Assembly: GCF_964194025.1 (NCBI RefSeq) | Contig: NC_134474.1 | Location: 20,026,001-20,090,000 of the forward strand | Reading direction: 5' to 3' | DNA length: 64,000 nt | Source: Convolutriloba macropyga | Lineage: Eukaryota | Shown here: piece by piece, positions 4,350 to 40,345 of the stretch | Layout: each line of letters starts with the position of its first letter | Numbering within the stretch: position 1 is the stretch's first letter | The notes under the pieces: model-generated | The model's input: the letters and a program-made list of their open reading frames with translations, nothing else | Database searches by the model: none | Told to the model about the DNA's origin: nothing | Position numbers and translations under genes: made by a program

Positions 4350-5578
4350 AAAAAGGAGGCTGGCTAATGTGAGATTGCATATAATGTTGCGACCCCACAC
4401 ATCGACAAACTTTCCTCAAATGTCTACCAGTTGAAACAGAGATAGGCTGCCTCCAAAATAATGAGTTCAAATTTTATTTGATCTTTTATAGATTTTCCAA
4501 AAAAAGGACAGTCATCTATACAAAAAGAATTTCACACCAGTGAAATCATTTTTTGTTGTTTCATTGGTATGAGTACTCAATGTGAATGATATGTAATAAC
4601 ATATATCGTATTTTCTTAAGCAGTAAAAACAATGTTGCCCAGTGAACATTTTCGTTAACCAAAAAGAACCAAAAGTGATATCCAAATATCAACATGAATC
4701 TGTTTTTCAAAATTATCTCTAACTCATGTCTTTTAGGATTTGAAAAACGGCAAATCTCTTAAGACTATATTGAGAAATGCAAAATGAAATCAAATTCAAA
4801 TAGAGGTTCGGCACGCCATATAATCACAAGGCCAGTCACACTTGAAACAAGCCACGTTTGCCCGAGGAACGCATCAAAAGACTAGTCTATCGGATCATAT
4901 AAACAAAGGAATGCGTAACCAAAATACAGAAAATTTTCATGAAGCAAACTCTGATTTTAATTAAAAAATTTTGGTGCTGATCAAATACAATATTACAGTA
5001 GGGTCCAAATTTAAAATATACTTAATTATAAGATCTCTAATTGCCAACCAACCACTTCCGACAACAACAAATATCTTCAAAATCAGTATAAAAACATAAC
5101 ATATAGTAATCTGCGACAGAAAACAAAGAGAAAACGAAGAAAAAATTATATGGCCGCAAAAAAATAAAAAGAAAAAAACAGTTCGAAAACTAAATAATCC
5201 ACATTGTAATCAAAATTTGTTTGATTCCAAAACCGCAATAAAATTAAAGTAATAGCGTTGACACTGCTTCAGGTTTTTATAAACCGTAAATAATTTTAAT
5301 TGCCAGATAATTGGGCAAAAACTAACAAACTTTGATAGAAAGAGAACAAAAATGTCAAAAAATTCAGAGCAGATTTTTTCACAGAAATTGTAATTCTCGA
5401 TAACTACTCGAAAATTTAAAAGTGGTGATTTTTTAGATTTCTTTGTCTATGTGGGAAGGGAATTCTAGTGATTTTACTCACAAATTTCTACAATAAATAT
5501 ATCGACCGGCCAATTTTGATTGAAAAAAAAACGCTTGAGCATATATTGTTCCTCCCTCCATAAGGGGGTTGGAAACTA
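4350..5578 (-). mobile_element. Helentron-associated non-autonomous element (HINE/DINE-1-like), copy 1
   Basis: The reverse complement of about 5380-5578 aligns with 6735-6950. Bases 4350-4445 (aaaggaggctggctaatgtgagattgcatataatgttgcgacc) align with the reverse complement of the 3' hairpin end at 9785-9877. Confidence 0.65.
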
Positions 5579-6734
5579 AAACTTGTGTTCCTTTATTGGT
5601 GTTGCAATAAAAGCAAAGTTTAGAACATATCGAAATTTTGCGATTGGTTGACTGAAATTATTGTTAGATAAAGCACAATATTTATACTAAGCCTGTTGCA
5701 GTAGTTCAACGCAATCGAAAGTCTTAAAGTTAAAGAGAATTAAAAACTGTTTTACTTCAAAACTTAGGAGAAATTTTCTCAGCTTTTCTTTCAAAATTGA
5801 ATATTTTGAGAAGATATGCTCATTGCTCAGAAGTATTTGATCAGTGTTTGCAAAGGTAGATGGAAATTTTTCTGTAATTATGATTAAAACCTCCAATTTT
5901 TTCTGCTCCATAATTATTGTTGGTAATCAATTGTGCGAAAATTTTGTTGCGTCAACATCTCTATTCAAATGGTCTTTTTGTCATTTCTTTAAAGGAATTT
6001 TGTCTTCCAGAACATAGAAAAATTACAAAACCACAATCCGTGCTTTTTTAATTACAAACTTTGCCTCAATTTATTTTGAGTGAGATCTAATTAAATCCTG
6101 TAATTAAGAAATGCATTATGAAGCAACATTTCTTCGTTCTGTTACATAATTGTTCCATTGGAAGTTCAACAGATATTGTATGTTATCAGTATTCTAAAAA
6201 AACAATCAACTATATTTTAGCTTAGGTCAATTACAACGCAACTTTTGCTAGCACAATTTACGCTCTTGATTCAATTAGCTCAACTTGCACTTTCAACACC
6301 TCAACTCTCTATTGCTGGACACCATGATTTATACCGAGTAATTTTTCCAGCATATCAAACGGACTCAATCATACGCGTTAAAAACCAGCACTACAGGTAC
6401 GCGCCAGGCAAGTTGTCCGCACTAAGACTAAGAACGTATTAGTATTGACACTTTCCACTATCAACTTATTTCAGTTTGGGCCCTCAAGACTTCAAACAAA
6501 TGTTTTTTTCATTTAGGCGTTCAAATATCAACCATTTTCTTACTTGCTTATTGATTGCAACTATCAGTTGCACTAGGGAGACTTGCTTGAAGCAGAATTT
6601 CTCATGGGAATGAACAGTAGCCTCCAATAAGAACCCTTACAAACCATACATTGTAGCACATTCTTCTGAGGTATAAAGCGAAAGTTGAGAACCCTTAAGA
6701 ACACTGATTGATGATTTTCATGATGGTAACTACT

Positions 6735-9700
6735 ATTTTTTCCAACCCCCACTTTAGTGGGGAGGAGGAACTATATACTCAACTGGTTTTTTTTTGTTCA
6801 GTCAATTTTGGCCGATCGATATATTCATCGTAGAGCTTTGTGAGTGGTATCATTGAAAAGCCCGTCTAGCGTAGAATACGGAATTAAAAAGTTTTTTTGA
6901 TTTTCGTTTTTTACAGGGAGTTATCGAGGTTTAAAGTTTTGTGAACGTTCGATTGTTTTTGTTCACATTTTCAGTAATTTTTGCTAAAATTTAGCACAAT
7001 TTCGCTAATATAGTTCAAAATAAGTTAAAACTTTTAACGGCAGAGTGTTGCTGTTACCGTTAGACATAGAAGACAGTTGCTGAATTGTTTGATTGAGGTT
7101 TTTTCTGGCTAAAATTTGGATAAAATTTTCAAAATTCAAACTTTTTTCATCAAAAATGGCACAAAATATGCTTATTTGTTGGCCTTTCTTAAAATTTGCC
7201 AGATTTAGTGACCTAGAAACCTTAAAACAGACTACTTAATCTCACAAACAGTGCTAGTTGCAATTAGGCGCGGTATGAAAGTCTTCTGGAATTAAAACTT
7301 TGCCGTTTTTTTTGCAGATTTAACATTTTTTAATATTTGAAGAATTCCACGCAACAATTGTACAAATTCACAAACACTTGGAACACTTGGTCGGTTTGCT
7401 GGGCGCGCGATAAAATCAGGGAGAGGTTCGACAATATCTTGGATTCTTAGAATCAGAGACTTTTTGGTTTTTATTTTGATGCTGCCTTTTTTCTAAATAA
7501 TTTGCCTTTGTTTATTAATGTTAGTTACTGACAATTTTTTTGTTCACGGCTCCGTTAATGACAGCTCCAATTTACGTAAATTTGATGCCAAATGTAGATA
7601 CAGTTTGTTTTCAGAGAACCAAGGTGTTTTTATGGCTTTGAGGAAGAGTTTTAGTAAAATTTAACTGAGTTCTTGTCTTTTGCCTTCAATTGTTATTCTT
7701 TTGGCAGTCTGATTTTTAAGTTTGACCACAAAATAATTTATATTTATTCCTGAAGAGGTGCAATTGAACCTTTTCTGTTCACGCGGTTGTTACCTAATGT
7801 CTCTTATGTTATTGAATGCATTTGTTTTAGGAAAATTTCTGTGATTTTATGAACTTGTCAATTTTTTATGTTCATTTAGTCAACAATTAGTTTATTCTCA
7901 GTAAGTACAGGTCAATCTTTCCTCCATATAGAATACAAATTTTGTGGCCGATTGTTTTAAGAGAAAGTTTTCTTGCTTTTGGAAATACGAGTTTTTATAC
8001 AAAATTTTCTGATTTTTGTGCATAATTTCCCATTTTTGTCGTTGTTTTTGTTTTGTTTTTTTTTTGTAAATTGCAACATTATTTTGGAATATAAGTGAAA
8101 AAAATTTTACAACATTTGAAATTGAACAAATTTTTTGTTTTCTTAACGTATGGTTTGAAGGGCTGCGACACCGTTCTCTTGCAGAAATTGGTAGAGTTTT
8201 TTTTATTTTTGCACTTTTATTTGTTGTTAATTTTTGTTGTCAAATGCCAATTATTGTGTAATTAAAGGTCTCAGTGGCCAACTATAGAAAAACAAATGAA
8301 CCTAATAACTGATATCGGTAAATAGCTAATGGTGGTTTTGACCTTCGAATTAAATTTCTAAAAAAGTAATTGTGTTCTTCAGCTTATCCCTTTTTGTTGT
8401 GGTTTGCGTTTTTTTCGTATTATACAATTTTAAATCATTTTCGAAAATTAGCCTCTTTGTTTAGAGCTCTTTTTAAAGTTTTGTTGAATCAATCAATATT
8501 TTTTCTGTTGTTGAAACGTTTTATGTGATGTCTTCAGGGCTTAGACAATTTGTTTCAGAAGAATTTTTTGAAGTTTAGATACTTCTCAGTTTTTGTGGTT
8601 CTTTTTGTAGTCCTTTTGTGATATTCGTTTTACAAAAAGACGTTATGACGGTCAAAATAGACGCAAATGATGATGTTATATTCTCGCGGTTAATATCTTG
8701 TAAATTTAATGGCTTCAAAACTGTGGTTTCGTAAAGCTGTTTGTGAAACTTATTAAATCAGCTTGTATTTAATATTATTTTAGAGTCTTATGATTTAGTC
8801 TCATTAATTACAGTCAGAATTAACTTTCCAAGTAGTTGAAAGACAAACTGTCTACTCTTTTAGTCGAAAGCATTTGTTGGCAATGAATTTTGAAAATAAT
8901 TGTTTTTAATAAAAAAAATATAGACTTTTGAGATCTGTCAATTTTATATGTGTTAAATTGTAGCTAAGCATCTCTATATATAATTCATATCATTTATCTA
9001 TTGAAATACAATTTGCTCTTCACAACGGTTTTATTTTCCTCAAATGGTCTTTCATCTTGGAACAACCAGTTTTCATAAAACCAATTTTCGTGATTTTTGC
9101 ATATTTGCCCCTTTTTTGTAGGTTTTTGTTCTGTTTTCACAGTACCACAATAATGGGCGTCATTTGATTTACAAATTTTGTTACCTTCAAAAATGCAAAC
9201 GAAGATGTTTTTTGTTTATAGTGATCAGCTTAATATTTAATTGATTGGGGGGACATCGTTTTCGTGCATAATTTTTCGTCTAAATTTTTAGTTTTGCCTG
9301 CACTTGTCGTTTTTTTGTCGTCGTATGACAAATCCTGGATAATGAAAGGCCTCAGTCGCTCTCTATTGAGGTATAAAAGATTCTCTCGATGATTTCATTT
9401 GATGCGTAATATTTCTAATCCGTTCGAATTTAATTCCTTTTAAAAAAAAGCAACGTTTTAAAGTACTTTGCCCATTTTGAACATTTCTAGTCGACATGTT
9501 GTCAAGTTGCACCAACAAAAAGTCCCTTATCTTGTTCCAAAAAAGTGCCGGTTAATCTTCTGATTATAAATTTTATCCTTTGCCGTTTTGATTTGTTCAT
9601 TTGTGGTTTTCAAAAAATGGACAGGGAGTTTTGTTCGTAATTAATATTTTTAACTATTTGATTTTTTGTCGTCTTTGCTGGTAGTCATATTATGGTAGCC

Positions 9701-20348: not shown

Positions 20349-21107
20349 TTGTGTTTAGATAATTGTAGACAAAATAATCCCGGGATCAAAACCATCAATT
20401 TTGATTAATTGAAAAGAAAAAGTGAAAAATTTACAAACGTGCTCTTCCTTTTTAGTATGATCAGCCTCACACTCAGATTTTGGCGAACTCAAAATCCATC
20501 AAGATCAGAATCTGAACAGCTCTTTTTCAATTATAACTAGAACTTATTAACTTGTTTAAAGCCAGAATTGGTCAGATCTGAGCTGGCTTTCGGAGCTTTT
20601 CATTGAGTCATTTTGCCAGTAGTTTCAAGCATAACACAACCCCGTGGGCGTTTAATCTAGCCTGATCATCGTTATACGTGATTGTTGATTAAATTTAATC
20701 TGTTCAAATTATCCTAATGCAAAACAATCACGCTGTTCAAAATGAGCATAACTAGATTAATAGAGCGGAATTCTGGACCATTGTGTAATTATGAGCGCAC
20801 TTCATGCGCTGAACGTTTAATTTTGAGGTCATTTAAATTGTTTCATAATGAGTGATTTTGAAAAATCTTCTCTATCTCGTTAGCTACCTATAAATGGTAG
20901 CATTATTCGCATTAACAAATTACTATGTGATCAAATTACACAAATGTTCTGCGGATTCGAACTTCTGAAATTGGAAAAGGAAAACAGTTTCAAAATTTAA
21001 TTTAGGAAAGAGTTTCAAAGTTGGGTTGAAAAAAGGGAAGCATGTTAAATTAAATTGTGGAAATTCATCATTCGTAAATAGCATTGAAATTTAAACTTTG
21101 ATGTTTC

Positions 21108-21251
21108 TCATTTGGCGGCTGGTTTGCCTTTCTTAGAGCTAGCGGGCTCCCTTTTGACCCCGAATGTAGCAAACACTCCAATTCTGAACGACTCACTGGC
21201 CAGGAAGTAGAGAAAGAAGTTCATTGCATTGTTCAGAGCCACTGGCAATTC
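21108..21251 (-). CDS. GPCR exon 6 (TM7, helix 8, C-tail, stop)
   Basis: atcgtttag|ELPVALNNAMNFFLYFLASESFRIGVFATFGVKREPASSKKGKPAAK-TGA. Confidence 0.92.
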   Translation of the reverse strand, partial: ELPVALNNAMNFFLYFLASESFRIGVFATFGVKREPASSKKGKPAAK

Positions 21252-24200
21252 CTAAACGATAAATAGGAATATGCACCAGTATAGGTCGAATGGATGATTT
21301 GACTTGCTCTTCTAGTACGTTACGGCGCTCTAGTAGCATTACTCGGGATAAACATTCTTGGAAATCATACAGTGAACATTAATGGTTTCAAATACAAAAT
21401 CTCTTAGTATTATCTTGCAATGAGTAAGAATAATATATGACCTTCTCATGGTTAGTAAGACAAAAATGAGAATCAAAAATCCAAATTCTCTTCTTTATAA
21501 AGTTTTTCTTTATACTTGGTGCTTCAATTGCAGTACAAATGGAAAGCTAAACAGCTCTTACAAGAATTAGTTTTCCTCAAGGCCAAGAGTTTACAAGAAC
21601 TGCTATATTGTGATGTAAAGTGCAAAAATTTTTCTTTAAGTTTAGCTTTTTGCTATTGGCCATTTAATACTGGTACACAATCATGTTCTATATAAATCAG
21701 AAAAACTAATCTGTGCAGACGCAATTATGTGGTTGGGATTGAGCTTATTTAAAACAAAAAAGGAGTTTCTCTGAATTTATTATTTTTCAGAAAACTTCCC
21801 CGCTTGCCTGAGACAAAAATAGATTCTGAGGTGTCTCACTACATTATTTAGAAAATAGTGAAAATCTGTACACGTAAATTTTCTATATATGACTGCTAAG
21901 AAGCGAAATTTTCATTTTTGTTATTTTAAGCCCAAAAAAGTGTTTTGACAGTTTTTATGTTCCTGCTATATTTTCTACGATGCTTTTGTGTTTAAGAACC
22001 ATTTATGATCTTAGAAATTTTCTCTAAAATTCCATAAACCTTATATCTCTTGTGCCATAAACCCTATAAGCATCATAATTATTAAGATTGTTAAAGGTGT
22101 CCAACTCGGATAGCAATATAGCAAATGCATTTTGGGGTGTGCCAAAAAATGCACCCAATATACTGGTGGGGGCAACGGGAAAAGTGCTTTTCATGAATTA
22201 AATTCATAATTAAAAATTTGTTTTGAAACAGGCACATGGTCCAGACAAAAAATAGGAAAGATTCAGATTATGCGAAACAGTTGGCAAAATATTATTTTTA
22301 CTATTGTTTTACTGAACAGATCATTTTCTGTTTTTGAAATGTCGAAACAAATAATTTTTCGAGTGGTATCAAAATAAAATCATTTTCACAATAGAAATTA
22401 GATCACATTGAATCCTTTTAATGTTGAATTTTATTCAAAAAAAATGAGTTGGTGATAAGAAAATCAATATTACTTCGCTGCAACACCAGTGATTCTTGAA
22501 TTCCCATCGTGTAAGGTTCGACAAATTTGTGGCCAAGTTGCACTACCAGCGCTTAGAAGATTATGCACTGCCTGGCTACGTCTTTGTAAGACACGTAATG
22601 GTCAAGTGAACGATGGAACATTTTTGCAAGCTCTTACACAAAAACAGTTCAAACTTATCAGATATTACATAACAAAATATCAAACTTGTCAAACGTTGTA
22701 CGATAAGATTTTAGGAACCGTTGGGAGAGTAGTTTTGTTTCATCGAGTCGACACACTGTTTGTCAACTGTTCACAGATGTTTGGGAATATCGAATACTAA
22801 CCTTTGATATCTTTAGCAAGAACTCTGTCGAGAAGTCAGTAACGTATCGTCCAGTAGTCAAAATGAGAGAGATAGATCCGAGCAGCATGTTGACAGTGAA
22901 GAAAGCAGCCAACAATACCAGAGACAGAGTGATTTCGCGCTCTTTCTTTCTGCTAGAAGTATTGGCCGCAGCTACATATCATACGGAACTGTTTCCCAAT
23001 CAACCAGGAAACTTTTGCCCGCCTACTTTTTTCAAATACTTGTCAAAATGCCAATTTTTGCAAAGTCAGGAATTTTTGAGGTTTTTGTTTGCCGCTTGAT
23101 ACTCAAATTTTACGATGTGAATGACACAATGGTAGTCATCGATACCGCCAAAAATGAAGAGATCAAAAACTTATTCTACCAACCAATCAACATACCAAGC
23201 TTGCAATAACTCTTGCTATAAAATCTAGCTTTCCACAGAATTTTGCAGCTCTAAATTTGATCTGTAGTTAGTGTACAAACAAAAAAATCATTCAAATTTG
23301 TTTTTTGTTTTTCCAAAAAGAGATCCCTTTTGACAGAGAATAGACCTTTGGTTAACTTCAGTTCATTTTTAGTAAAATATAATTTTATGAGCAGATTCCA
23401 TAAAAATCGGAAAAATCAGTCTGTTTGAGATTTTAAGGCATTTTATGTCAAGCTGCGAGGCTAAGAATTTAGAGCACCCACTGTATAAATGGAAAAACAA
23501 TGGGCGACAAAAAGTGCCTAGTGCAAGGAAGTTTTGAAAAGTTTTGCTCAAAAGTTATAAAGGTTTGTAGAAATGGACTTAAAAAGTAAACCAATCGTTT
23601 CAAAACTAATTTTGAAGAACTAGCTTGCTAAAAAAGTTTCGCTAAAAAATTATGCATTTACTGTACTAAACTGGATTTGATTTTTCTAAAAGTGTTCATG
23701 CTCAAAAACTAAGGTCTGTTCAATATAACCAAAATTCAAGAAAACTCAATTCTCTGAGTAACCTCAAAACTGAATTTCGAAAAATGGAAAGTTAAATTTG
23801 CAACTCAGGTGTTTATCTCTTTCTGAAACAAAAACCTAACAATTCTGAAGTTTGCATTAGTAAAATTTATGTTGGTTCTACCCAATACATGTCACTAACA
23901 TGAAAATGTAATTGAAAGTTATATATCTAGTTTCATTCTATTGGGAATACTTTTTCTGTAAACTGATTGTTATATTGTAGGCTATTGAAACTTACAAAAA
24001 CTTGAAATGTTCTCCGTTTAATGAATAATAACTACGAACAACAAAAGAGAAAATGATTTTCCATAATTCTTAAGGTTTTAGCAGTTTGCTTCAGAAAACT
24101 GTAAACTAATTTTTCGCTATAGTTTAGATAATTTTTAACTGAAGTTTTTAAAATCAGTAGTGCATTTTCCTATTTTTATTGGGTTTTGTTAACTTTTCTT

Positions 24201-27200
24201 AGTTATTTTTGCACATGATACAATATCCAAAATGATAATTATTTTCAACAACACAAAAATATTGTTTTTGAACATTGATTTGAAAATTTGAANNNNNNNN
24301 NNNNNNNNNNNNNNNNNNNNNNNNNNNNNNNNNNNNNNNNNNNNNNNNNNNNNNNNNNNNNNNNNNNNNNNNNNNNNNNNNNNNNNNNNNNNNNNNNNNN
24401 NNNNNNNNNNNNNNNNNNNNNNNNNNNNNNNNNNNNNNNNNNNNNNNNNNNNNNNNNNNNNNNNNNNNNNNNNNNNNNNNNNNNNNNNNNNNNNNNNNNN
24501 NNNNNNNNNNNNNTATATATACATTTAGAACTGTTTCCTAAATTTTTTGTCAGATATATTTTTTTTTTGCTTTCAAGAAATAAACAAAAATCTTCTACGC
24601 ATGACTAAATGCGCAATCCCTATAAGTTGCTTACAGTCACCAAAGATAGCTTGAAATTGCAAACGAGATGTTAAATCAGCCATCTGGACTTTCAACGTAT
24701 TGTTTTCTTCAACAGCAATTGTTTTTAACTCTTTTTACTCAAATTGTTTTTATTTTTATTCAAGGATCCAATCCATAGCTTATTTGAATGCGTATTTTGC
24801 AACAAAATTTTTGATTGACTAGACTCGGTAAAGTACTTTTATTCCGCGCAGCATTACGTGTAAAGATATGAAAAACGCAAACAGCTCATCAAAAGATCGT
24901 GGTGATGTAGTGGTGAATTTAGTCCTGAGGTAACTTTTGGAACTCTTCTAATGGAGAGTTCAAAATCAACAACCAAACACTCGAACCGGCACCTGGGCAC
25001 TTCTTTCGGTCAGGGGAGGGGCAGTTTGGATAATTATATACTATTCTATTACCGACGGCTATCTTGCAAGATCTTGTTAGAATCTTGTAAGATAAGCGTC
25101 ATCTGCAAGAATCTTGGAAAGATCATGCAAGATAAAGCGTCGGAGTTCGACTAGGATAGTTCAAAGAAAGGTGGAGAAAACAGTTCCTGCAGATGTCTTA
25201 GATGTCTGCTTCAGTTTGAATACAATGGCCACACTCGATCCCCCGACCAGAGCAATTGGAATGAGGAACATGAATCCGAGGATGTTCGATTGCACATAGA
25301 TCTCAGCAAGGAGAGTCGAAGAGTCGAAGTCACACAGGCCTTCAAGGCCGATCTTCTGACTTTAGAAACGCTAGTTTTATGTTAATCTGTTTTTTAGTTT
25401 TCTCGCTAGCAATTGAGGCTGCTTGAGAAAAAAACTCACTCATGAACTTCTGTTTTAATGAACCTCTAGTTAAAATGCCAGAGTTCTCTATAATCAGAGC
25501 AAGCAGTTAACTTTCGCAAGCTTTCGGCATTTTCAAACAATTCGTGCAAATTTTCGTGACCGCAGATGTCACTTCAAAACTTTGGCGCCTCAATTTACAT
25601 TTGGAATCGTTACGTGGTTTTCGACAAACCGTACTTCTTGCCAGAAGACTTTTCAAACTGAATCTCGAAACTTATACTTAATGAACATTATACCGTTGTT
25701 ATCAACATGAAGAAATGATCAAACTCCGAGGCGAAGTCGAATTGATGACATTAAATGGCCAAGCGCCGAAAACCAAAATTTGAATAAAGTTTATGTTTGT
25801 TAAAACAAAACTATTATGAGCATGTAATTGGCCTAAAACTTTATTTCCCGAATTTTTTAAATAAATATTTGAGACGAAATTCTAATACCTAATTGTTCTT
25901 GTTATCAGTGGTATTTCCAATTTCAATCATTCATATTTGAAATTAATCACCATTTGGGCTTCCTTTTATTTCGGTAATTATTTCTGTATACGTGGGAAAG
26001 GGGAAATTTTGAAGCAAGTTTAAATGAAACTTGGTTAGTGTATCTAGTTTCCGCACACGCTTACAAATCTGAGCTAAAAACGTGAATCGTAAAAACACAT
26101 AACAAAATCGACACATAATCAAACCTCAATTTTCCCATCCCCGATCATTATTGTTGGCTACATGAAAAAATACCCATTGCCAAAATACCAAACGTGCCAT
26201 TTTGCCCAAAATATTCCTTTTAATCTTTCCATTCATTAACCCGATTACAATTTAGCACTCGATATTACAAGCATTTTTTGTCATATTTAAGCAAATACTT
26301 GATTGTTATGTCCGGTTGTGATAGCTTCATATTAAATCCCTCAAGCAACTGAGGCATGGTCATGGCCCACGAGGCATGCCCGAATGCAATGGCTAAATTA
26401 AATGCTAAATAATCGTTCTGTTAAATTAATCTCTTACTCTTTAGAATAAAATATTAGATATATTTTGGGTACTTTGACTTATTGAGTGTTTCGACTTTTG
26501 GCCTGGAAAACTGAAAAATGTGTCGAAATTTGTAGCAAGTAACAGAATGTTGTTTTTCGAGTAACATCAAGCGAATTGTTCAATATTGATGTTTGTTTTG
26601 CTTTTATTTCGACTTGTCTTTTTTTTCCGTGGTTGGCTCTGCATTCTATAAAGTGTACTGGTCTTCGTATTATTTTTGATTTTCAAATGTTTTTTTTCTC
26701 CCTTTATTATTTTCTTTACTTTGGATGAAAAAAATAATGCGACGTTTCCGCAATACAAAATGGTATTTTGCATAATCGAAGAAATAGACCATAATTTAAA
26801 GACGTGTTCAACCTTAGGTTGCTATAAAATTAGTATCAAAATTAGGTAATTACTTTCAATCAAAACAAGGAAAAATGATGTAATCTTTTTTATGATTGTT
26901 CTTGATGTAATGATGACGTTATCATTGTTTGGTTTGTCTTTAAACAACACACATGGTGCATGCCTTAACTTGCTTCAACTCAAACGGCAGAAATTCACAA
27001 TGGGGGCCTCAAATAATGTTTAAGAGCTTTGTTAATTGAATACCGAGTAAGATCAATTTCTCTCACAAATATGGAAACATGCATGAGAAACTCGTTCGAA
27101 AAGTAAAATTGGACAGATAAAAAACCATGGGCTAAAAAATTGCAGATATGATCAAGTGGAACCAAATAATTGCTGTAAACTTTGTCTTTTAGAGCTATTA

Positions 27201-30200
27201 GAAATCAACCACCAATGCTACGAATTTTTAAAAAATTTTTGTAGCATATTTTGAAGAGGTAGTTTTCTGGGAATAAAAGACTATTTATGTTAGCAAACCA
27301 TTAAAAATGTTGTGTCCTATTCCCTCTTTTTCTGAAATTACATAAAAACAAGGATGGAAACATTGCACCCACCCCTAAATTTATAAGCAAAAAATCAAGA
27401 AAGAAACCGTTACTTTTGAGACCATACTATTTCGGCAGTGCATGTATTCTACAAAGTTTAGATCTTAAGGTAATTTTATATTTTTTTCTGACGACCAATA
27501 TGATAGAACAGCGGCCTCTTGGAGGAGAAAGTCCAAATCGGAATATCATTGGAATGCAGAAAATGCAAGTGGCCACAACAACTGCTATGCAGGCACCCAA
27601 AGCGTACTTGGGCTTCGATTTCTGGTAGTATTTGACTGGAACCCACACGGCCAGTAAACGATCGAAAGATAGTCCAGCCAGGCAAAAGTTCGCTAAAAAT
27701 TCATTATAACCTCTCATCAACTGCACAATACCTAATATAATTATTATCTTTAAAAACTATATACAATTAGTGTCTCTGGTGCTCGTGACCTTCTCTTAAA
27801 TCTTCAATTTCACCTAGTAATCAATTAACCAAAAATATAGTTGGAATCTTGCAAGAAGCTGTTATGTTTTATTGCAAAGGATCCTTTTTCGAAAGATTTC
27901 ATTAAATATTTGTACTAATTAGTCAACATTTATTTTTGCTGGATACACTACCCACAATGATTCCTATTACTATTCACATTACCAAATTTTCTCAATAAAA
28001 CTTCAATAGCAGCAAAAAATATTTTGAGGGGAATGAGCGTATTCTGTGCGCTCTTATTTTCTGATCAATCTTTTTTTCCTATTTTTGAATTTTTAAAAAA
28101 ATATATTGAAAATGTATGTACATTCATGATTTCAACCCAAAACTTAAACACAGACATTGGAAAATTTTGTCCCAACTCTTTAAATATTTTTTAAAATGTA
28201 TAACTCTGGAAGCATAAAATATTTTCAGGCTGAAACCCTCAGTTAGCTATTTGAACAACACTATGTCTCAGCTACATAAGCAAGCTGCACGGGCAAACTC
28301 TCGTTAACAAAAAGGACTGCGGTTCTTTTTGGAAAGGTTGAAGTAACTTATTTTTGGGCAATTTATGTGCCATTTTCTGGTAACATTTTTTTCAAAATCG
28401 CGGTTTTTTTAAGTCTCCAAATTTTTAGGCAGCAATTTTTCTGATGTCTGTATAATGTAAAATCACTTCGAAAGAGCTCTCTGCATCAAAATACACTCTT
28501 TGTTTTTTGTAGAAAAAAGTAGACAGTATAATGGAAACGTTTACAAAGTTACAAACGTTCACCTAACATTTTTTCTAAAGTATGTTAAGTTTGACAGCTT
28601 TTGACAAGGGGTGAAATTTTCTAGTTAATCAGATTTACAAATAGAGGAGTTGAGACAAATAGGTAAAACAAATTTGCAAAACTACGCTTTGAGAGAAAAA
28701 AGTTTTTTTTCGCTCTCAGAGAAAAAAAGTTTTTCTGTTTACCGAAGTTTTTTGTGCGACATTTTTTTTTTCGTTTTGTTCAAATATTTACTCAATTCTT
28801 ATCTAAACTGTTCAGATTTTAGAAAATTGTTTGGTACCTCAAAAACGTAAATAATTCATATAAATCATAACAATTTTATGGCGTCTCATTTTCTCTTCTT
28901 CAATTACTTCGATGAAAAATGTTTGTTTGAGTGATGAAATCAAACCATAGTTCGATTCTTCAGACAAATGGGGCAAATTGGTTTTGAAAAAAAAACACAT
29001 TGAACACAACAAAAGTTCAATTTGTATTATTGCGACGGTTAAATAGAACATGATGCTAAAATTTTTGAAAAAATTACTCTTTATTAGCCCTTATAATACA
29101 CATTTTCTCTCAACGGCCTTCCAAGTACCCTGGGCAATTAGAATACAAAGATTTTTTCCCAGGAGAATTTTTGCCGTGCTTTGTCATCAATATCATAAAA
29201 TTGCCATAAAAAACGTTTTCAACTCACTTTCCTGCTTAGTTAAACAAATTGAAGGAAAACATCAAAAGACAATTTCTTTTGAGATAAACTTCAACACTCT
29301 AAGGCAATGGCAACCGAAGATGCGTTTTAAATAGAAAAGAAAAACAAACTAATAAATATTTTTTTCAAAAGTAAATGTATGAAAGGCAACAATTCTTGTT
29401 CTTTTATTTCAAAGTTTGTCATATTTAGACTGCTAATAAAATTTTTCTCATTATCATTTTTTCTCAGAAAAGTTTTGTTAGAACTGGCTTCATTTATTTT
29501 AAGCCTTGTTTCTCGAAAAATGAAAAACCTGAAAAAGATTCTCAAAGATGACTTACGTTATTCAAGTTTTTCTCAGTCTTAGGTTGTTTATTTAACTCTC
29601 ATCAAAAAATAATCATCGGCCATAATTAGCTGAAAAATTTGGAGCTGGAATAATGTTTTTATCCGCCAAATATATGAGGAGTGTTGGATTAAAATTAAAA
29701 CTTCTTCTTTGTTTTACATCATGATGATGTGTCACAATTTGATTGTTCAAAAACAGAATTTCTTCTTTTCCTATCATTGATTACTTAGATATCTAGTATT
29801 TGTACTCCTTCAATGCATTTTTTTTACTTTCAGGATCTGGAACAAACAAAAATTGCACCGGCAGACTGCAAATAGTTGTGTTCTATTACAAAAAATTTGA
29901 GGGCTTCCCAAACTTTACGTAATAGAGCGCAATAATCGTAATGTTTCCGTGCTTTTTTGTGCGTTTCTGGGTTTTCTGGTTATTTTAAACCATAATGATA
30001 TGTCACAATTTGATTGTTCAAAAACAGAATTTGTTTTTTTCCTATTATTGATTACTTAGATATCTAGTATTTGTACTCCTTCAATGCATTGTTTTTTACT
30101 TTCAGGATCTGGAACAAACAAAAAATGCACTGGCAGACTGCAAATAGTTGTGATCTATTATAAAAAATTTGGCAGACTTCCGAAAATTTTCTTTCATAGA

Positions 30201-33200
30201 GCACAACAATCGTAATGTTTCCGTGTTTTTTTGTGCGTTTCTGGGTTTTCTGGACCTCTAACTCTATTTGCTCGTCAGCCCATCTTTCCCTGCGTCTTTC
30301 GAATTTCCCGAAGAATTAGGGGAAGTTTGCCTTTTGTCCATATTTTATCTCTGAATTTAATGCAGATCCCATTAGGACGTCTTGACGTTTTACCCGCAAC
30401 TAGTTTCTTTTTCCCACAACTCCCACAGAGAAATTTGAAATTCCCGCATTTCACACTGAGAAAAAATTAGATCATTTTAATACTTATTAGCGCTTAGAAA
30501 TCTCAAGAACATGTGAGAAAAAATGGAAGAAAAGAAAAAAGTGAAAACTTACAAAGTTTTTCAGGAAAATATGCACCTGGTTTTTTCCTGATTATTCCGC
30601 TCATTGATTACGGTTTTATTCGAAAATCCAGGACCAGGGAAGATAACTTCCGTTGTGGAAAAATCGTTGATTTTTAAATCAATTAATCGAAACGGAGCCC
30701 CAAAAAGGCTTTGATGTGCATGTAAAATTAGTTCCTTTATTTATTCAAAATTTCGGTTTTGAACGGCAAAGACAAAAAATTGAACACTTTTTGGTATTAA
30801 TTCAATCCATTCGAACAGAAAACTTACATATGATCATTGTACAACCAGAGTAGTAGGCAAGAGTCTTGCACACTGGTAGGTTGAGTCCTCTCAAGTTCAA
30901 TCCAAATAGAGGCATACACGTGTTCAAAAGCACCCGAATGCACGCAAGATTGTCAGCTACTGCCAGGCACTGAAAAAAATGAAATTCAAAATTTGGAAAT
31001 TATCCACAAAATTTCAATTTCTCATTTAGAGTTGAAAAAGTTTTTGACTTCGGAAACTGTTGTATATCATTTTTAAATGCAGCCAAGAAACTGTGCGTAA
31101 AGGAAAATTTAAAAAACGACTTCCATTTTTACTGTGTTTTATATTTACCGCACTCTTGTTACCGCAGGATTTTCGCCACAAATTTCTTACATAATATTGT
31201 GGCAAAAGGGTTGAATTCTTAAATTTTGAAAGCTTCACAAATGCTTGCCTTCGTGAACAATTTTGGGGGTTTCTGTTTTCCAATAAATTTAACTGAATCG
31301 TATATGTATCATATTTGTGTTTTAAAATCCAAAACTACCAGAAGTTATTATAGTGTTTTTTAAGATAAATTTTTTTACGATAGTTTTTAAAGTGACTAAA
31401 AAATGGCGTATAAGATTGAATATTGGCCTTGGCAATCAAAGCGTTGTAAATCTGAAGTAACTTGGTTTCTGTGATCTGTCTCTTATCACAGCGCAAAGAT
31501 ATCCCAGCTTACCGAAGCATCATAAACCTTTTTATGTTTCGTCCTTTCTTTTCAAATTCAAAATATCTGTTGCTATTGTTTTAGGGATAAATTTGTACTT
31601 TTCCAAAATCTAGTGTTGAGCGTTTTGCGTATCCTATCTACAAAACTATGTCAAGCTCTGAGATCAATATTGATGACTGTTTTCATGATGAAAAAGTGGA
31701 AAAATATTTCAAAAAAATTTTTAGTTTGCTTCTTAGATTCTGAATTAAAAGAAAACGACAGCAATTTAATTATTTAATTTAGTAGCTAACAAAGACAGCT
31801 TGGCATTGTTCTTATCATTGAACTATTAAAGTTGAAACGTTTGAACTTAATTTCTGGACACTTGGGTATTACTAGATCATCACAACTTTTTAATTTTACA
31901 CATTTTGGGTATAAATATTTCCAACTTAAAGCGATTTTAAAAGTTTTTAAAACATAACTGTGGACATCGCTTAATTGTTTAGAATTTCTTTATATCAGTT
32001 TAACAAGTTAATATAGCACTTTAGTACTTTGCCAGAAAAATTGTCAAGTAGCTATAATAAAGTTAAATAGGTTAATAATAAAGTTAAAGGTTACTAAGTA
32101 AAGTATGGCACCTGCGCCTGCGGGGTGTAAAAGTTCTATGCCCACTAAGCTGCGGGGGGGGGGGGGGGGGAGGGAGGGAGGGGGGGAGGGTGTTGGGATG
32201 AGTAGATTCCAAACCAGTTTGCCTTTGCACGTTCTGCCTCATTTACACTGCTCCATTTTCCATTTAATTTGAAAATATTGTCCTCAAAATATTGACGGAA
32301 AATGTGTATTTTTTCAATGTTTATCACTAGATTTTAAAAAGTATTGTTCAATAACGATATAAGAACAAATTTTAGGCCATGGTTTGATGTCCCGTGTGTT
32401 CTCTCAATTTTAAAAACTACATGAAGACGTGTGTAGCTCTTGTGGAATGAAGAATGAACTTCTCCATGTTTCTTCTTGAAACCCGGGTCGAGGTTTGGTC
32501 AAAAAATAATGTAAGATTAGCGGTGAATAGCGGTGATAAAAAACTTTTTCAAACGCAAAGCACCCGCATCTCTTATCGTTGAATGCGGTGAATTTTTGCC
32601 GTTTTTAGTGGTGAAATTTTTTTTTACCGCATTCACCCGATTTCTTACAAAAAAGAAACTATCTTACACGGTTTCGACCAGCTCACCTTCTGCATGTCAA
32701 CAACTTTTTATTCCACTGCGCCATCTGTCACTTAGTTCAATGATATTTCCTGTGAATATAAGATAAGCGTTAAAATTAGCGCGGTGAATATTTGAAAGAC
32801 TTGCGATTTTAGCGGTGAAAAAATTTTTTTCACCGCATCCTGCTGGTACCGATTAAATTTTTTTTCACTGCATTCAACTGGTAGCGGTGAAAAATTTTCT
32901 TTCACCGCTTAAGCGGTGAAAAAAAACTTTTGACCGCTTAAAAGTTTTTTCCACCGCATTCATCGCATTGAACGAAAATCTTACTTTTTTACTCATATTC
33001 CTCGCAAATCTTACATCTCTTAGCGATTTCCAGCGGTGACACCTCGACCCGGGAAACATTAAGTTAATATCTCTGCTTATGAAGTCATTTAGAACTTCAG
33101 GCGTTAAACAAAAACGCTAAGCGGTTCGAGATGTTTATCTAGAATTTCGAAGTGAATTCTGCAGAGTCTCAGCTTGCACGTATTAAACTGAAAGAAGTTC

Positions 33201-37482: not shown

Positions 37483-40345
37483 AAGCAACAATCACCACTT
37501 TGTCCATCAAAGTAGATCAAAATTGACGCAGTTAACGAGAGGTGGTGGAGTAGGGATATGGGTACCAAATACGTTCAAACATAAAATACGGAATGATCTC
37601 AACTCTATTAACAGAAGTTTTTTTGAATCACTATGGCTTGAAATACAAGCACCGTTTAAGGAAAAACTTCTAGTTAACGTTTCTTATTGTTCCAATAAAA
37701 ACTTGGGCGAATTTTTTCTAGAAGAGTTGACATCAGAAATTTCAGGCGCATATTCAATAACTGATAATGTAATACTATTCGGAGACTATAACATCAATTT
37801 TTTCAATCAAAGAGAAAAAGAGTTATTGACAGAATTTGCTTCCAACAATGGGCTTGAGATAGTAAATAAAAATACTCCAACCTGGACAAATGGAAATCAG
37901 GAAACATTAATTGATCACTGTTTAACAACGAAACATCAAATTTTTGATACAACTGTTATCGAGCAATTATTTGGAAGTGATCATTTTACACAAGTTTTCT
38001 TTTCGTCACTGGACATTGATTATGAAAACAACAAAACGCAATTTTTTTACCGGGATACTAGCAAATTTACTAGAGCTAATCTTAACAAAAAAATTGCATC
38101 CGCGGATTGGAGTTTCATGTATCAACAAAACAATGCAAACTCAACTTTTGAAAAATTTTCAATTATGTTTGAAAATTTTCTGAATAGTATAGCTCCCATC
38201 AAAATAGGAGAGCCATCATCAAAATCAAAAAAAAAAGAAATGGTTATCCAGAAAAATTCTGAATCTAATCAACGAAAAGCACAGGCTTTTCAATATTTGG
38301 AAGATAACAGCAGACGTTGACACATATAACTCATACAAAAGAATAAGAAACCATACAAACAGACTACTTAGAAGAGCGAGCCACAATTATTCACAGAAAT
38401 TGTTCGAAAGTCTTCCCGATTCAAAACAACAGTGGAAATTCATTAAAACAAAAATAAAACACGAGGATAAAAACGGCGAAATTTCTAGAATTCGGTTCAA
38501 CCAAGATATCTTAAAAGACAAAAAAGAAATCGCTGACACAATTAATATTTGTTTTTCTAAATTAGGTTTATACGAAGGCGAGACAGAAAAGATTGAGCTA
38601 CCGGACTTTGCTTTTGACAAAACTGAGTTTTCCTTCAGACATATAACGAGAAAAGAACTGTTTACTGTAATTGATCAATTACCACAAAACAAAGCAGCGG
38701 GTCCTGGATTACTCACTACATGGTCCTTCAAGTGTAGCAAAATGTCTATTGGAACACATCTACAGTTTGCAATAAACGAATGTATTTCAAAAAACATTTT
38801 TCCTGACATACTTAAAAAAGCATATGTAACTCCAATTTACAAAAAAGGGGATCCACTGGAAGCAGGAAACTACAGGCCAATTTCAGTTACACCGACTCTT
38901 GCGAAGATTTTTGAAAGACTTTTGCTCCAACAAATGTTAGAACATGTTGAAAAGTATGAAATAATCAATAAAAATCAGTTTGGGTTTCTGAAAAGAAAAT
39001 CTTCGAATGACACAGTAATATCGTTGACAGAATCAGTGAATAGTTTGTTAGAAGAAAACGAAACCGTCGTTAGTATATTCTTGGATTTAGCCAAAGCTTT
39101 TAACTCAATATCTCACAAAATTTTTCTCAAAAAAATTACTAAATATGGATTTAGTACGGAATCAATTGCAATGCTAGAATCGTTTTTGTCTAACAGAAAA
39201 CAATGCGTAAAGAACGGCATAGAATATTCGAACTGGGTGACAATAAATCACGGAGTACCTCAGGGAACAGTTCTCGGACCTTTAATTTTTTTAATATATA
39301 TCAACGACTTCCCTGAAAAAATGAAAAAAAGAGAGGACGTTTTACAGTTTGCAGATGACACATGCATTATTTGTCATTCCAAATCCGATGAAAATCTCTT
39401 ATGCGAAATTAACAGTGTATTTGAAAGTACTGACAGTTATATGAGGCAAAATATGCTAACTTTAAACAGAGATAAAACAGAAATTGTGGTTTTTTCAAAA
39501 AATGGTGAATCAAAAATTGAACAATTTCATTATAATGGAATTTTCATAGAGCCAAAAACAAGTTGTCGTTATCTAGGTATAATGATTGATAACAATCTAA
39601 ATTTTGACATTCAGCTGAACAAAACATTAACAAAAATGGCAAATGCTATTAGGTCAATTTACTTAGTAAGACATTTTCTACCACTAAAAGCAAGAATCGT
39701 TCTTTTTAAATCACTTGTTTTGTCCCATCTCAATTTCAGTGCAATTTTTTTTCAATCGTTGTCGGTTATGTCACTTCAAAGAGTTAATAAACAAATAAAT
39801 TGAGGAATAAAGGTTTGCCACCTGCGCAAAAAGTTTGACAGTGCAAGAGATCTATTACTGAAAGACAAAATTTTACCAGCAGAGCTTTTCATTAAAAAAG
39901 TTTGTCTTCTTAAATTTTTTGATTTCCTCTCACAATATGAACAGAGTAGTCGAGAAACCAAAAACTCCTCTTTCAGGATTCTTGAAAAGTACGAATTGAA
40001 CAAAAACTGCAGAACTGTCCAGTTTTTTCCAAAGAATAAGTGCCAATCCAAATGGAGTGACAGGTCACTGATCAGAAATTTTTCTAGGAAATGGAATAAT
40101 TTGCCAATTGAAATCCGAAAAGAGAAAACTAAAAACAAATTTAAGGAAAAACTAAGCAGCGAAATGGTCAAACTGCATGAACGTGTTCCAATAGATAGAC
40201 AAGTAAGAGGCTTTAGGAAATTTTTCTACTGAAGTATAAAGACCAAACTATTCATATATTTACGAGGTGATTTTGAAAATGTAAATATTTAACCAAACGT
40301 TCCTGTTGTGGTTATAACTTTAAATTTACATTTTTGAAGATAAAA
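37483..40345 (+). mobile_element. Nearly intact, 5'-truncated LINE ORF2 (APE endonuclease + RT; L2/CR1-like)
   Basis: APE motifs RGGGVGIW, GDYN, PTW, IDH and SDH (37523-38000). RT motifs NYRPIS, QFGF, LDLAKAF, GVPQGTVLGP, FADDT and YLG (38400-39803). There is one frameshift in the A-run at 38227-38236 and one in-frame TGA at 39801-39803. The frame continues to the stop at 40232. Confidence 0.95.

Follow-up and report, generated by a model that had tools for sequence, protein, structure and literature searches.

How new animal introns originate, and how the spliceosome handles them, is an old open question, and very few groups of animals have documented introns of transposon origin. A broad survey recorded introners in copepods and in only two animal taxonomic groups (PMC9860276). 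GA or GG donors occur in about 12% of the introns of Eurytemora affinis, a copepod; these introns are young, follow an obligate exonic AG, and carry A at +3 (PMC5714493). Our full-text literature searches did not find a report of such introns in acoels. We examined a 64-kb stretch of the Convolutriloba macropyga genome (contig NC_134474.1, positions 20,026,001 to 20,090,000; here called the window, within which window coordinates are given). Its minus strand carries a gene for a rhodopsin-type G protein-coupled receptor (GPCR), and intron 4 of this gene, between the exons for transmembrane segments (TM) 5 and 6, begins with GA and ends with AG. This is probably a genuine GA-AG intron that derives from a small nonautonomous element with terminal inverted repeats and whose repeat arms have been kept because they pair for splicing. 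That it is removed from RNA, that the spliceosome removes it, and that the helix is needed, we infer from the comparisons described below.

Borders and history of intron 4

To build the gene model, we combined open frames with a weak 7tm_1 match and compared each exon with that of L002, a paralogue that lies on the same contig at a distance of 500 kb and is 79-83% identical in protein sequence in the TM5 and TM6 exons. The model spans the TM2 to TM7 exons, which were searched singly. The last bases of the TM5 exon on the minus strand are ...TCTGCAG, to 25187, and GAACTGTTT/GAACTGTTTTCTCC follows from 25186. The intron ends ...GGGAAACAGTTCCGTATGATATGTAG/...GATATGTAG at 22972, and the TM6 exon starts with CTGCGG at 22971. 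The terminal dinucleotides are GA (25186-25185) and AG (22973-22972).

The GA at +1/+2 departs from the GT or GC of U2-type introns, and it is common to the window, L002, and contigs from four sequencing runs. The 3' end and the reading frame are those of a U2-type intron: it ends in AG, the phase-1 join agrees with the intron-less paralogues described below, and the ratio of nonsynonymous to synonymous divergence (dN/dS) between the window and L002 is 0.08 over the two exons downstream. A U12-type intron was ruled out, as the donor is GAACTGTT and not RTATCCTT. The acceptor is fixed at ...AG^CT (the caret marks the splice junction) by the first nine TM6 codons, which, compared with those of L002, have seven synonymous changes and a single replacement. 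In the window, this acceptor is closely preceded by an in-frame TGA, and in-frame stops also lie downstream of TM5. With the acceptor and these stops in place, G^GA is the sole phase-1 donor with G at +1. The only GT near the end of TM5, ACT^GTTTTC, is in phase 0 and 6 nt downstream of the proposed donor, and it was rejected because no phase-0 acceptor AG preserves the coding residues AAANTSSRK. The shifted registers GG..TA and AG..GT were also rejected; they are not kept between the paralogues, whereas GA..AG is.

Logan contigs from four DNA runs, drawn from two samples of one study, agree with the assembly at every base over 22700-24292 and 25047-25400, although these runs may be the source of the assembly itself. 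A base-call slip is thus not the origin of the GA at 25186-25185. That the sequence is continuous across the assembly gap at 24293-24513 is supported only indirectly, since in L002 the exons are in the same order and intron 4, at 945 nt, is ungapped.

More distant paralogues have no intron at this position. In the C2 paralogue, TM5 and TM6 lie in one exon, which reads ...TCT TCA G^TT GGG TCC AAC where L002 reads TCC TCA G^CT GCG GCC AAC, and this uninterrupted exon agrees with the direct TM5-TM6 join to within 3 residues. In the still more distant C1 paralogue, TM3 to TM6 are encoded by a single 201-aa exon. Both paralogues have introns 2 and 5 at the same positions as the C7 pair (the window gene and L002), but introns 3 and 4 are absent from both. 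This indicates that introns 3 and 4 were gained in the ancestor of the C7 pair. The position of intron 3 lies eight codons from a canonical GTAAGT intron in the C2 gene. Across TM3-TM6, the three paralogue lineages have three intron sets: none in C1 (L052 8109-8711), one canonical intron elsewhere in C2 (L051 and L003, G000:C2:2968000-2978765), and two pairing introns in C7. These differing sets point to what may be fast intron turnover.

The first-pass annotation had read the same GA-AG border from the letters, and that reading holds: L002 has the same GA, and the C1 and C2 exons match the junction. It had also set aside the nearby phase-0 GT, in agreement with our failure to find a compatible acceptor. 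The alternatives it raised fared less well. A base-call error conflicts with the four-run contigs and with L002, a splice-site mutation conflicts with the GA of L002 and with the low dN/dS of the gene, and a micro-exon in the gap is not needed, because the ungapped intron of L002 and the C2 exon both fit the direct join.

Complementary ends of introns 4 and 3

The sequence GGAACTGTTT (25187-25178), whose first base is the last base (G) of the TM5 exon, is the exact reverse complement of AAACAGTTCC (22994-22985), and 13 nt separate AAACAGTTCC from the TM6 exon. With U-G pairs allowed, the helix reaches 13 bp (25187-25175 with 22997-22985). The 10-mer arm is restricted to these two sites in the window (mean in shuffles, 0.2), and with up to one mismatch there are three sites, all within intron 4. 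The third site (24538-24527) suggests that intron 4 may contain two elements, in tandem or nested, and the left end that is missing may lie within the gap.

Both arms are present in L002. There the TM5 exon ends ...ATCCTCAG^GAACTGTTTCC, with TCAG before the intron and the same GA donor, and the TM6 exon, which begins CTGCGGCC, is preceded by GGAAACAGTTCC plus 13 nt, the same spacing as in the window. The inverted repeat of L002 is perfect over 12 bp and reaches 14 bp counting one G-U and one A-U pair. We found that the two copies of intron 4 cannot be aligned except at the donor CAGGAACTGTTT (12/12) and the 3' arm GGAAACAGTTCC (12/12). The first 10 positions of the 5' arm (25187-25178) and the exonic CA before them are identical in L002, as are all intronic arm positions (23/23), while the 13-nt spacer is almost wholly different apart from its final AG. 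The helix has changed at its edge only, by one U-G to G-U swap and by a U-G pair replaced with C-G. Over the same period, the proportion of synonymous differences (pS) has reached 0.59 in the TM5 exon and 0.71 in the TM6 exon. Against such a near-saturated neutral background, 23 constant intronic positions in two complementary blocks would be very unlikely without selection.

The dN/dS between the window and L002 is 0.11 over five exons, and it is low in the exons downstream of intron 4 as well. Thus, the reading frame has been kept across intron 4 since the duplication, from which it would follow that intron 4 is removed in frame.

Two other features of the pair were observed. The TM7 exon and its 3' flank are 89% identical between the paralogues (window 20903-21278 and L002 2236-2606; pS 0.19), whereas the TM3/4, TM5, and TM6 exons are only 71-79% identical (pS 0.43-0.71); gene conversion or a conserved 3' untranslated region could account for this. 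In both genes, a dispersed repeat of about 90 nt, made of ATCTTGCAAGAT-like units, lies about 90 nt into intron 4 (window 25041-25135; L002 646-737). It has many genomic BLAST matches, and in the window it interrupts the short-read contigs.

The ends of intron 3 are also conserved between the C7 paralogues. Its donor is AG^GCCGCTGTTCT in the window (GC) and AG^GTCGCTGTTCT in L002 (GT), and its partner, AGAAGATCGGCC at 25357-25346, lies 6 nt ahead of the TM5 exon. The ends pair at 10/12 positions in the window and at 11/12, including one U-G, in L002. For each intron, we predicted the energy of the duplex that its donor region would form with its last 50 nt, with z scores against shuffles. Intron 4 gave -21.3 kcal/mol in the window and -23.6 kcal/mol in the paralogue (z -3.3 to -6.5), and intron 3 gave -17.2 and -17.4 kcal/mol (z -2.5 to -3.5). 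The canonical, older introns 2 and 5 gave -8 to -9 kcal/mol in both paralogues, with z near 0. The terminus of intron 3, GGYCGCTGTTCT, is only about 2-fold enriched in the genome (118 versus 53), so in that exact form it is not an abundant family.

Features of the GPCR gene and of intron 4 in the window. Empty cells, nothing recorded.
Feature	Position	Strand	Basis or remark
TM2 exon	30828..30969	-	Comparison with L002; followed by canonical intron 2
Intron 2, canonical GTAAGT...AG	30827-27693	-	Duplex-energy and exon comparison
TM3/TM4 exon, FDR motif	27516..27692	-	Open frame and comparison with L002
Intron 3, pairing ends	25340..27515	-	Paralogue comparison, duplex energy
TM5 exon of rhodopsin-type GPCR	25187..25339	-	Open frame and L002 alignment; low dN/dS
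Intron 4, GA...AG, phase 1, 2215 nt as assembled (contains a gap of estimated length)	22972..25186	-	
5' arm GGAACTGTTT, perfect over 25187-25178, then U-G, C-G, and U-G pairs to 25175	25175..25187	-	Overlaps the splice donor
Very high-copy dispersed repeat in intron 4	25041..25135		Summed contig depth 10^4
Third, internal copy of the 3'-arm sequence, GGAAACAGTTCT, 1 mismatch	24527..24538	-	13 nt from the assembly gap
Assembly gap within intron 4	24293..24513		No contig of the four runs bridges it
3' arm AAACAGTTCC, perfect over 22994-22985, extended to 22997	22985..22997	-	Same as the family terminal repeat GGAAACAGTTCC
13-nt spacer between 3' arm and TM6 exon	22972..22984	-	Ends in the acceptor AG
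TM6 exon, then canonical GTTAGT donor	22802..22971	-	L002 comparison, dN/dS
Intron 5, canonical	22801-21252	-	Between the TM6 and TM7 exons
TM7 exon to stop codon	21111..21251	-	Open frame and L002 comparison

Elsewhere in the window, two long open frames at 37523-39803 on the plus strand resemble, as judged by eye, the endonuclease and reverse transcriptase (FADD motif) of a retrotransposon of the long interspersed nuclear element type.

A repeat family and its intronic copies

The arm of intron 4 is the terminus of a repeat family. As an exact 12-mer, GGAACTGTTTCC has about 498 copies in the genome, compared with 42 for the reversed control. The A-preceded form, AGGAACTGTTTCC, accounts for 114 copies in the 1.18-Gb genome (12 in the control), and the arm with C, G, or T in front accounts for 384 more (30 in the control). 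The base preceding the arm tracks background composition; thus, the element starts at GG. The terminus common to the copies is about 16-20 nt long, with GGAACTGTTTCC followed by T/C-rich sequence. Two pairs with perfect inverted ends 400-480 nt apart occur in the genome.

The family was surveyed in 30 sampled A-preceded loci of 3 kb. At 5 of the 30 there was a partner with at most one mismatch within 1.5 kb downstream (chance about 0.07, by our own estimate). With up to two mismatches allowed, partners were found at 10 loci downstream and at 5 upstream, compared with 0-1 in the reversed control. The terminal inverted repeats of these other copies are 15-20 nt long. Many family copies sit in noncoding DNA. 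Open frames precede the motif more often than expected: frames of at least 50 codons precede 9 of the 30 A-preceded copies (about 2 expected), and frames of at least 99 codons precede 4 (about 0.04 expected). Three of the long frames carry Pfam domains. The HARP match, in a SMARCAL1-like gene, ends ten residues before the motif, and the remainder of the domain would fall past the intron. The DUF6606 match extends exactly to the motif. The EamA match is weak (E 1.7e-4, under the Pfam cut-off), and its exon ends at the motif.

Two of the intronic copies, both in other genes, lay in full within the DNA sampled. In the EamA transporter gene (locus L034), the intron reads CGCAG^GAACTGTTTCC ... GAAAACAGTTCC plus 9 nt plus AG. 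It is 426 nt long and in phase 1, the flanking open frames of 56 and 280 codons match this phase, and the join falls within the first membrane helix, which is unbroken in a distant paralogue. In the SMARCAL1-like gene (locus L023), the intron reads TTTAG^GAACTGTTTCC ... GGAAACATGCTCC plus 13 nt plus AG^ACCC; it is 389 nt long, is in phase 2, and splits the HARP domain, and SNF2 exons follow downstream on the same strand. Two features of introners and of miniature inverted-repeat transposable elements (MITEs) are present here: terminal inverted repeats at the intron ends (10 bp in the window, 12 bp in L002) and many copies, including introns of unrelated genes. By these comparisons, GPCR intron 4 is one member of a family of GA-AG introns that appear to be transposon derived.

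The 10-bp complement lying 13 nt before the acceptor had been noticed in the first-pass annotation, and we find it nowhere else in the window. The annotation had offered two readings of it, RNA pairing of the intron ends and an Introner-like element with terminal inverted repeats, and the comparisons support both. Retention of both arms in L002 against a saturated neutral background is comparative evidence that pairing may be needed, and the roughly 500 exact copies of the arm, some of them at introns in other genes, make the proposed element origin more credible.

We propose the following origin. A small nonautonomous DNA element with terminal inverted repeats GGAACTGTTTCC ... GGAAACAGTTCC would have inserted after an A, so that its first G became the last base of the exon and the intron started at the second base of the element (AG^GAAC...). 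The AG used for the 3' cut would be 11-15 nt downstream of the right repeat. The insertion would be older than the duplication that made the two C7 GPCR genes; after the duplication, the interior would have decayed past recognition with both arms unchanged. The most likely reason for their retention is that in the pre-mRNA the arms may pair into a 13-14 bp helix. The U1 donor consensus is CAG^GUAAGU, and on that consensus as commonly given, CAG^GAACUG matches the 5' end of U1 at 5/9 positions. The helix would bring this weak donor beside the branch-site and acceptor region and so offset the poor match to U1, letting the spliceosome use G+1 and the AG. The helix would have to open again for catalysis. 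Removal by the spliceosome is suggested by the retention of the borders AG^G...YAG^.

Alternative readings and known systems

Several observations weigh against this proposal. The locus is held by four sequencing runs, none recorded as RNA and each with 94-96% of the sampled words, as genomic DNA would have; GA^...AG^ splicing was thus not observed. A helix over the donor would normally hinder access by U1 and U6. No clean compensatory change was found between the arms of the paralogues, since both arms are identical. A consistent target-site duplication was not found: the window, L002, L034, and others had none, and only locus L031 had an 8-bp direct repeat, matching at 7/8 positions. The interiors of the family differ, with similarity restricted to the 16-20 or so terminal bases, and BLAST of two copies gave unrelated repeats inside. 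In a blind scan of the window, we looked for AG^G sites that have a perfect complement, 11 nt or longer, with an AG after it. This gave 11 pairs versus 7.4 in shuffles, which is no enrichment, and none had coding flanks. Finally, the TM6 exon had 0 matches among 1.84 billion public protein representatives. Also in the window, the layout at 5565-6759 on the plus strand resembles a GG-AG hairpin: AAG^GGGGTTGGAA pairs perfectly over at least 11 nt with TTCCAACCCCC, 5 nt ahead of an AG. Its flanks are without a coding frame, and it is probably a noncoding inverted-repeat element.

The strongest alternative is that the intron is real and transposon derived and that its inverted repeat is a mere relic, in which case the spliceosome would accept any base at +2 and the helix would have no role. 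The splicing of GA and GG donors at high frequency in Eurytemora, with no nearby consensus noted (PMC5714493), makes this conceivable, as does the fact that the two arms are no more than the termini of a repeat family, and a relic would also fit the lack of a clean compensatory change between the paralogues. However, decay should have reached a relic as it did the remainder of the intron. The arms are instead identical at 23/23 intronic positions beside a spacer and an interior that cannot be aligned, next to exons whose synonymous sites are 59-71% different. Intron 3, with other arm sequences, also retains pairing ends in both paralogues. We therefore regard the relic explanation as unlikely.

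A second alternative keeps a role for the hairpin but not for the spliceosome: the hairpin would mark the intron for removal by a structure-guided endonuclease and a ligase, as debated for euglenid nonconventional introns. In its favor, the donor lies inside a strong helix, where U1 and U6 would have difficulty reaching it. This explanation is nevertheless improbable, since every family member seen has the spliceosomal borders AG^G ... YAG^, the 3' cut lies anywhere from 6 to 15 nt from the helix, and bulge-helix-bulge geometry is absent.

The remaining alternatives are very improbable. The exon model could be wrong: the true donor might be ACT^GTTTTC or another site, and its partner an acceptor further downstream or a micro-exon within the gap. 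A GT does lie 6 nt from the proposed donor and the gap is unread, but that GT is in phase 0 with no phase-0 AG that preserves AAANT(S/A)SRK, whose codons show seven synonymous changes to one replacement between the paralogues, an in-frame TGA precedes the acceptor in the window, the ungapped L002 intron requires no micro-exon, and the C2 exon fits the direct join. A dead gene, or a GA that arose through an error of assembly or base calling or through recent mutation of the splice site, would suit the lack of runs recorded as RNA and of a public protein match for TM6, but these readings are contradicted by the same GA in L002 and in the contigs of four runs and by a dN/dS of 0.11 across five exons, including those downstream of intron 4.

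We thus return to a transposon-derived GA-AG intron with pairing arms. More tentatively, we suggest that young transposon-derived introns in this bilaterian may be defined by RNA structure and not by their match to U1. Splicing would then require a cis helix joining the donor to a site 6-15 nt ahead of the acceptor; the helix would allow GA, GC, or GG donors and would be selected long after the transposon had decayed. The locus is a dated natural experiment: the insertion would predate a gene duplication with synonymous divergence (dS) of about 0.7, and decay has spared nothing but the two pairing arms, an argument that these are needed. Should the junction be confirmed in RNA, the two paralogues would be a ready system for studying structure-guided splice-site choice. 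Gene predictors that assume GT or GC donors will mis-model genes of this genome.

One parallel is with Eurytemora. Its GA and GG introns, like those described here, have AG at the exon end, A at +3, and a young, lineage-specific distribution, and they are needed for the full reading frame (PMC5714493). We found CAG^GAA in the window, L002, and L034 and TAG^GAA in L023, and the absence of intron 4 from the C1 and C2 paralogues is what a recent, lineage-specific gain would leave. Some listed Eurytemora donors, such as CAG^ggaaccagttt, also resemble that of intron 4 (PMC5714493). However, no nearby consensus, pairing, or transposon origin has been reported for the Eurytemora introns (PMC5714493), whereas the donor here is the arm of an inverted repeat belonging to a repeat family. 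In origin, intron 4 would resemble the introners of the larvacean Fritillaria borealis, which come from nonautonomous DNA transposons and in which splicing converts gene-disrupting insertions to introns (bioRxiv 10.1101/2025.08.15.670264). The two differ in their termini, since in Fritillaria the commonest pairs are AG/AC and AG/AT and fewer than 10% of introns are canonical (bioRxiv 10.1101/2025.08.15.670264), while here G...AG follows an exonic AG and canonical introns coexist in the same gene; the lineage is also different.

Outside animals, the introners of the dinoflagellate Amoebophrya are likewise noncanonical, with end-to-end inverted repeats of 8-20 nt, a predicted hairpin joining the exon borders, and MITE-like spread (PMC7789003). 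Those of this protist have direct repeats of 3-5 nt at their borders and no conserved terminal dinucleotides (PMC7789003), in contrast to the present introns, where we did not find a consistent direct repeat and AG^G...AG is kept. Nonconventional introns of euglenids (PMC12501133), as generally described, also have pairing ends that unite the splice sites and non-GT borders. As they are generally described, they differ in being without the AG^G...AG pattern and in a mechanism thought to depart from standard splicing. Intron 4 would belong to the already known transposon-derived noncanonical introns, as a variant whose GA donor lies in an arm of the inverted repeat.

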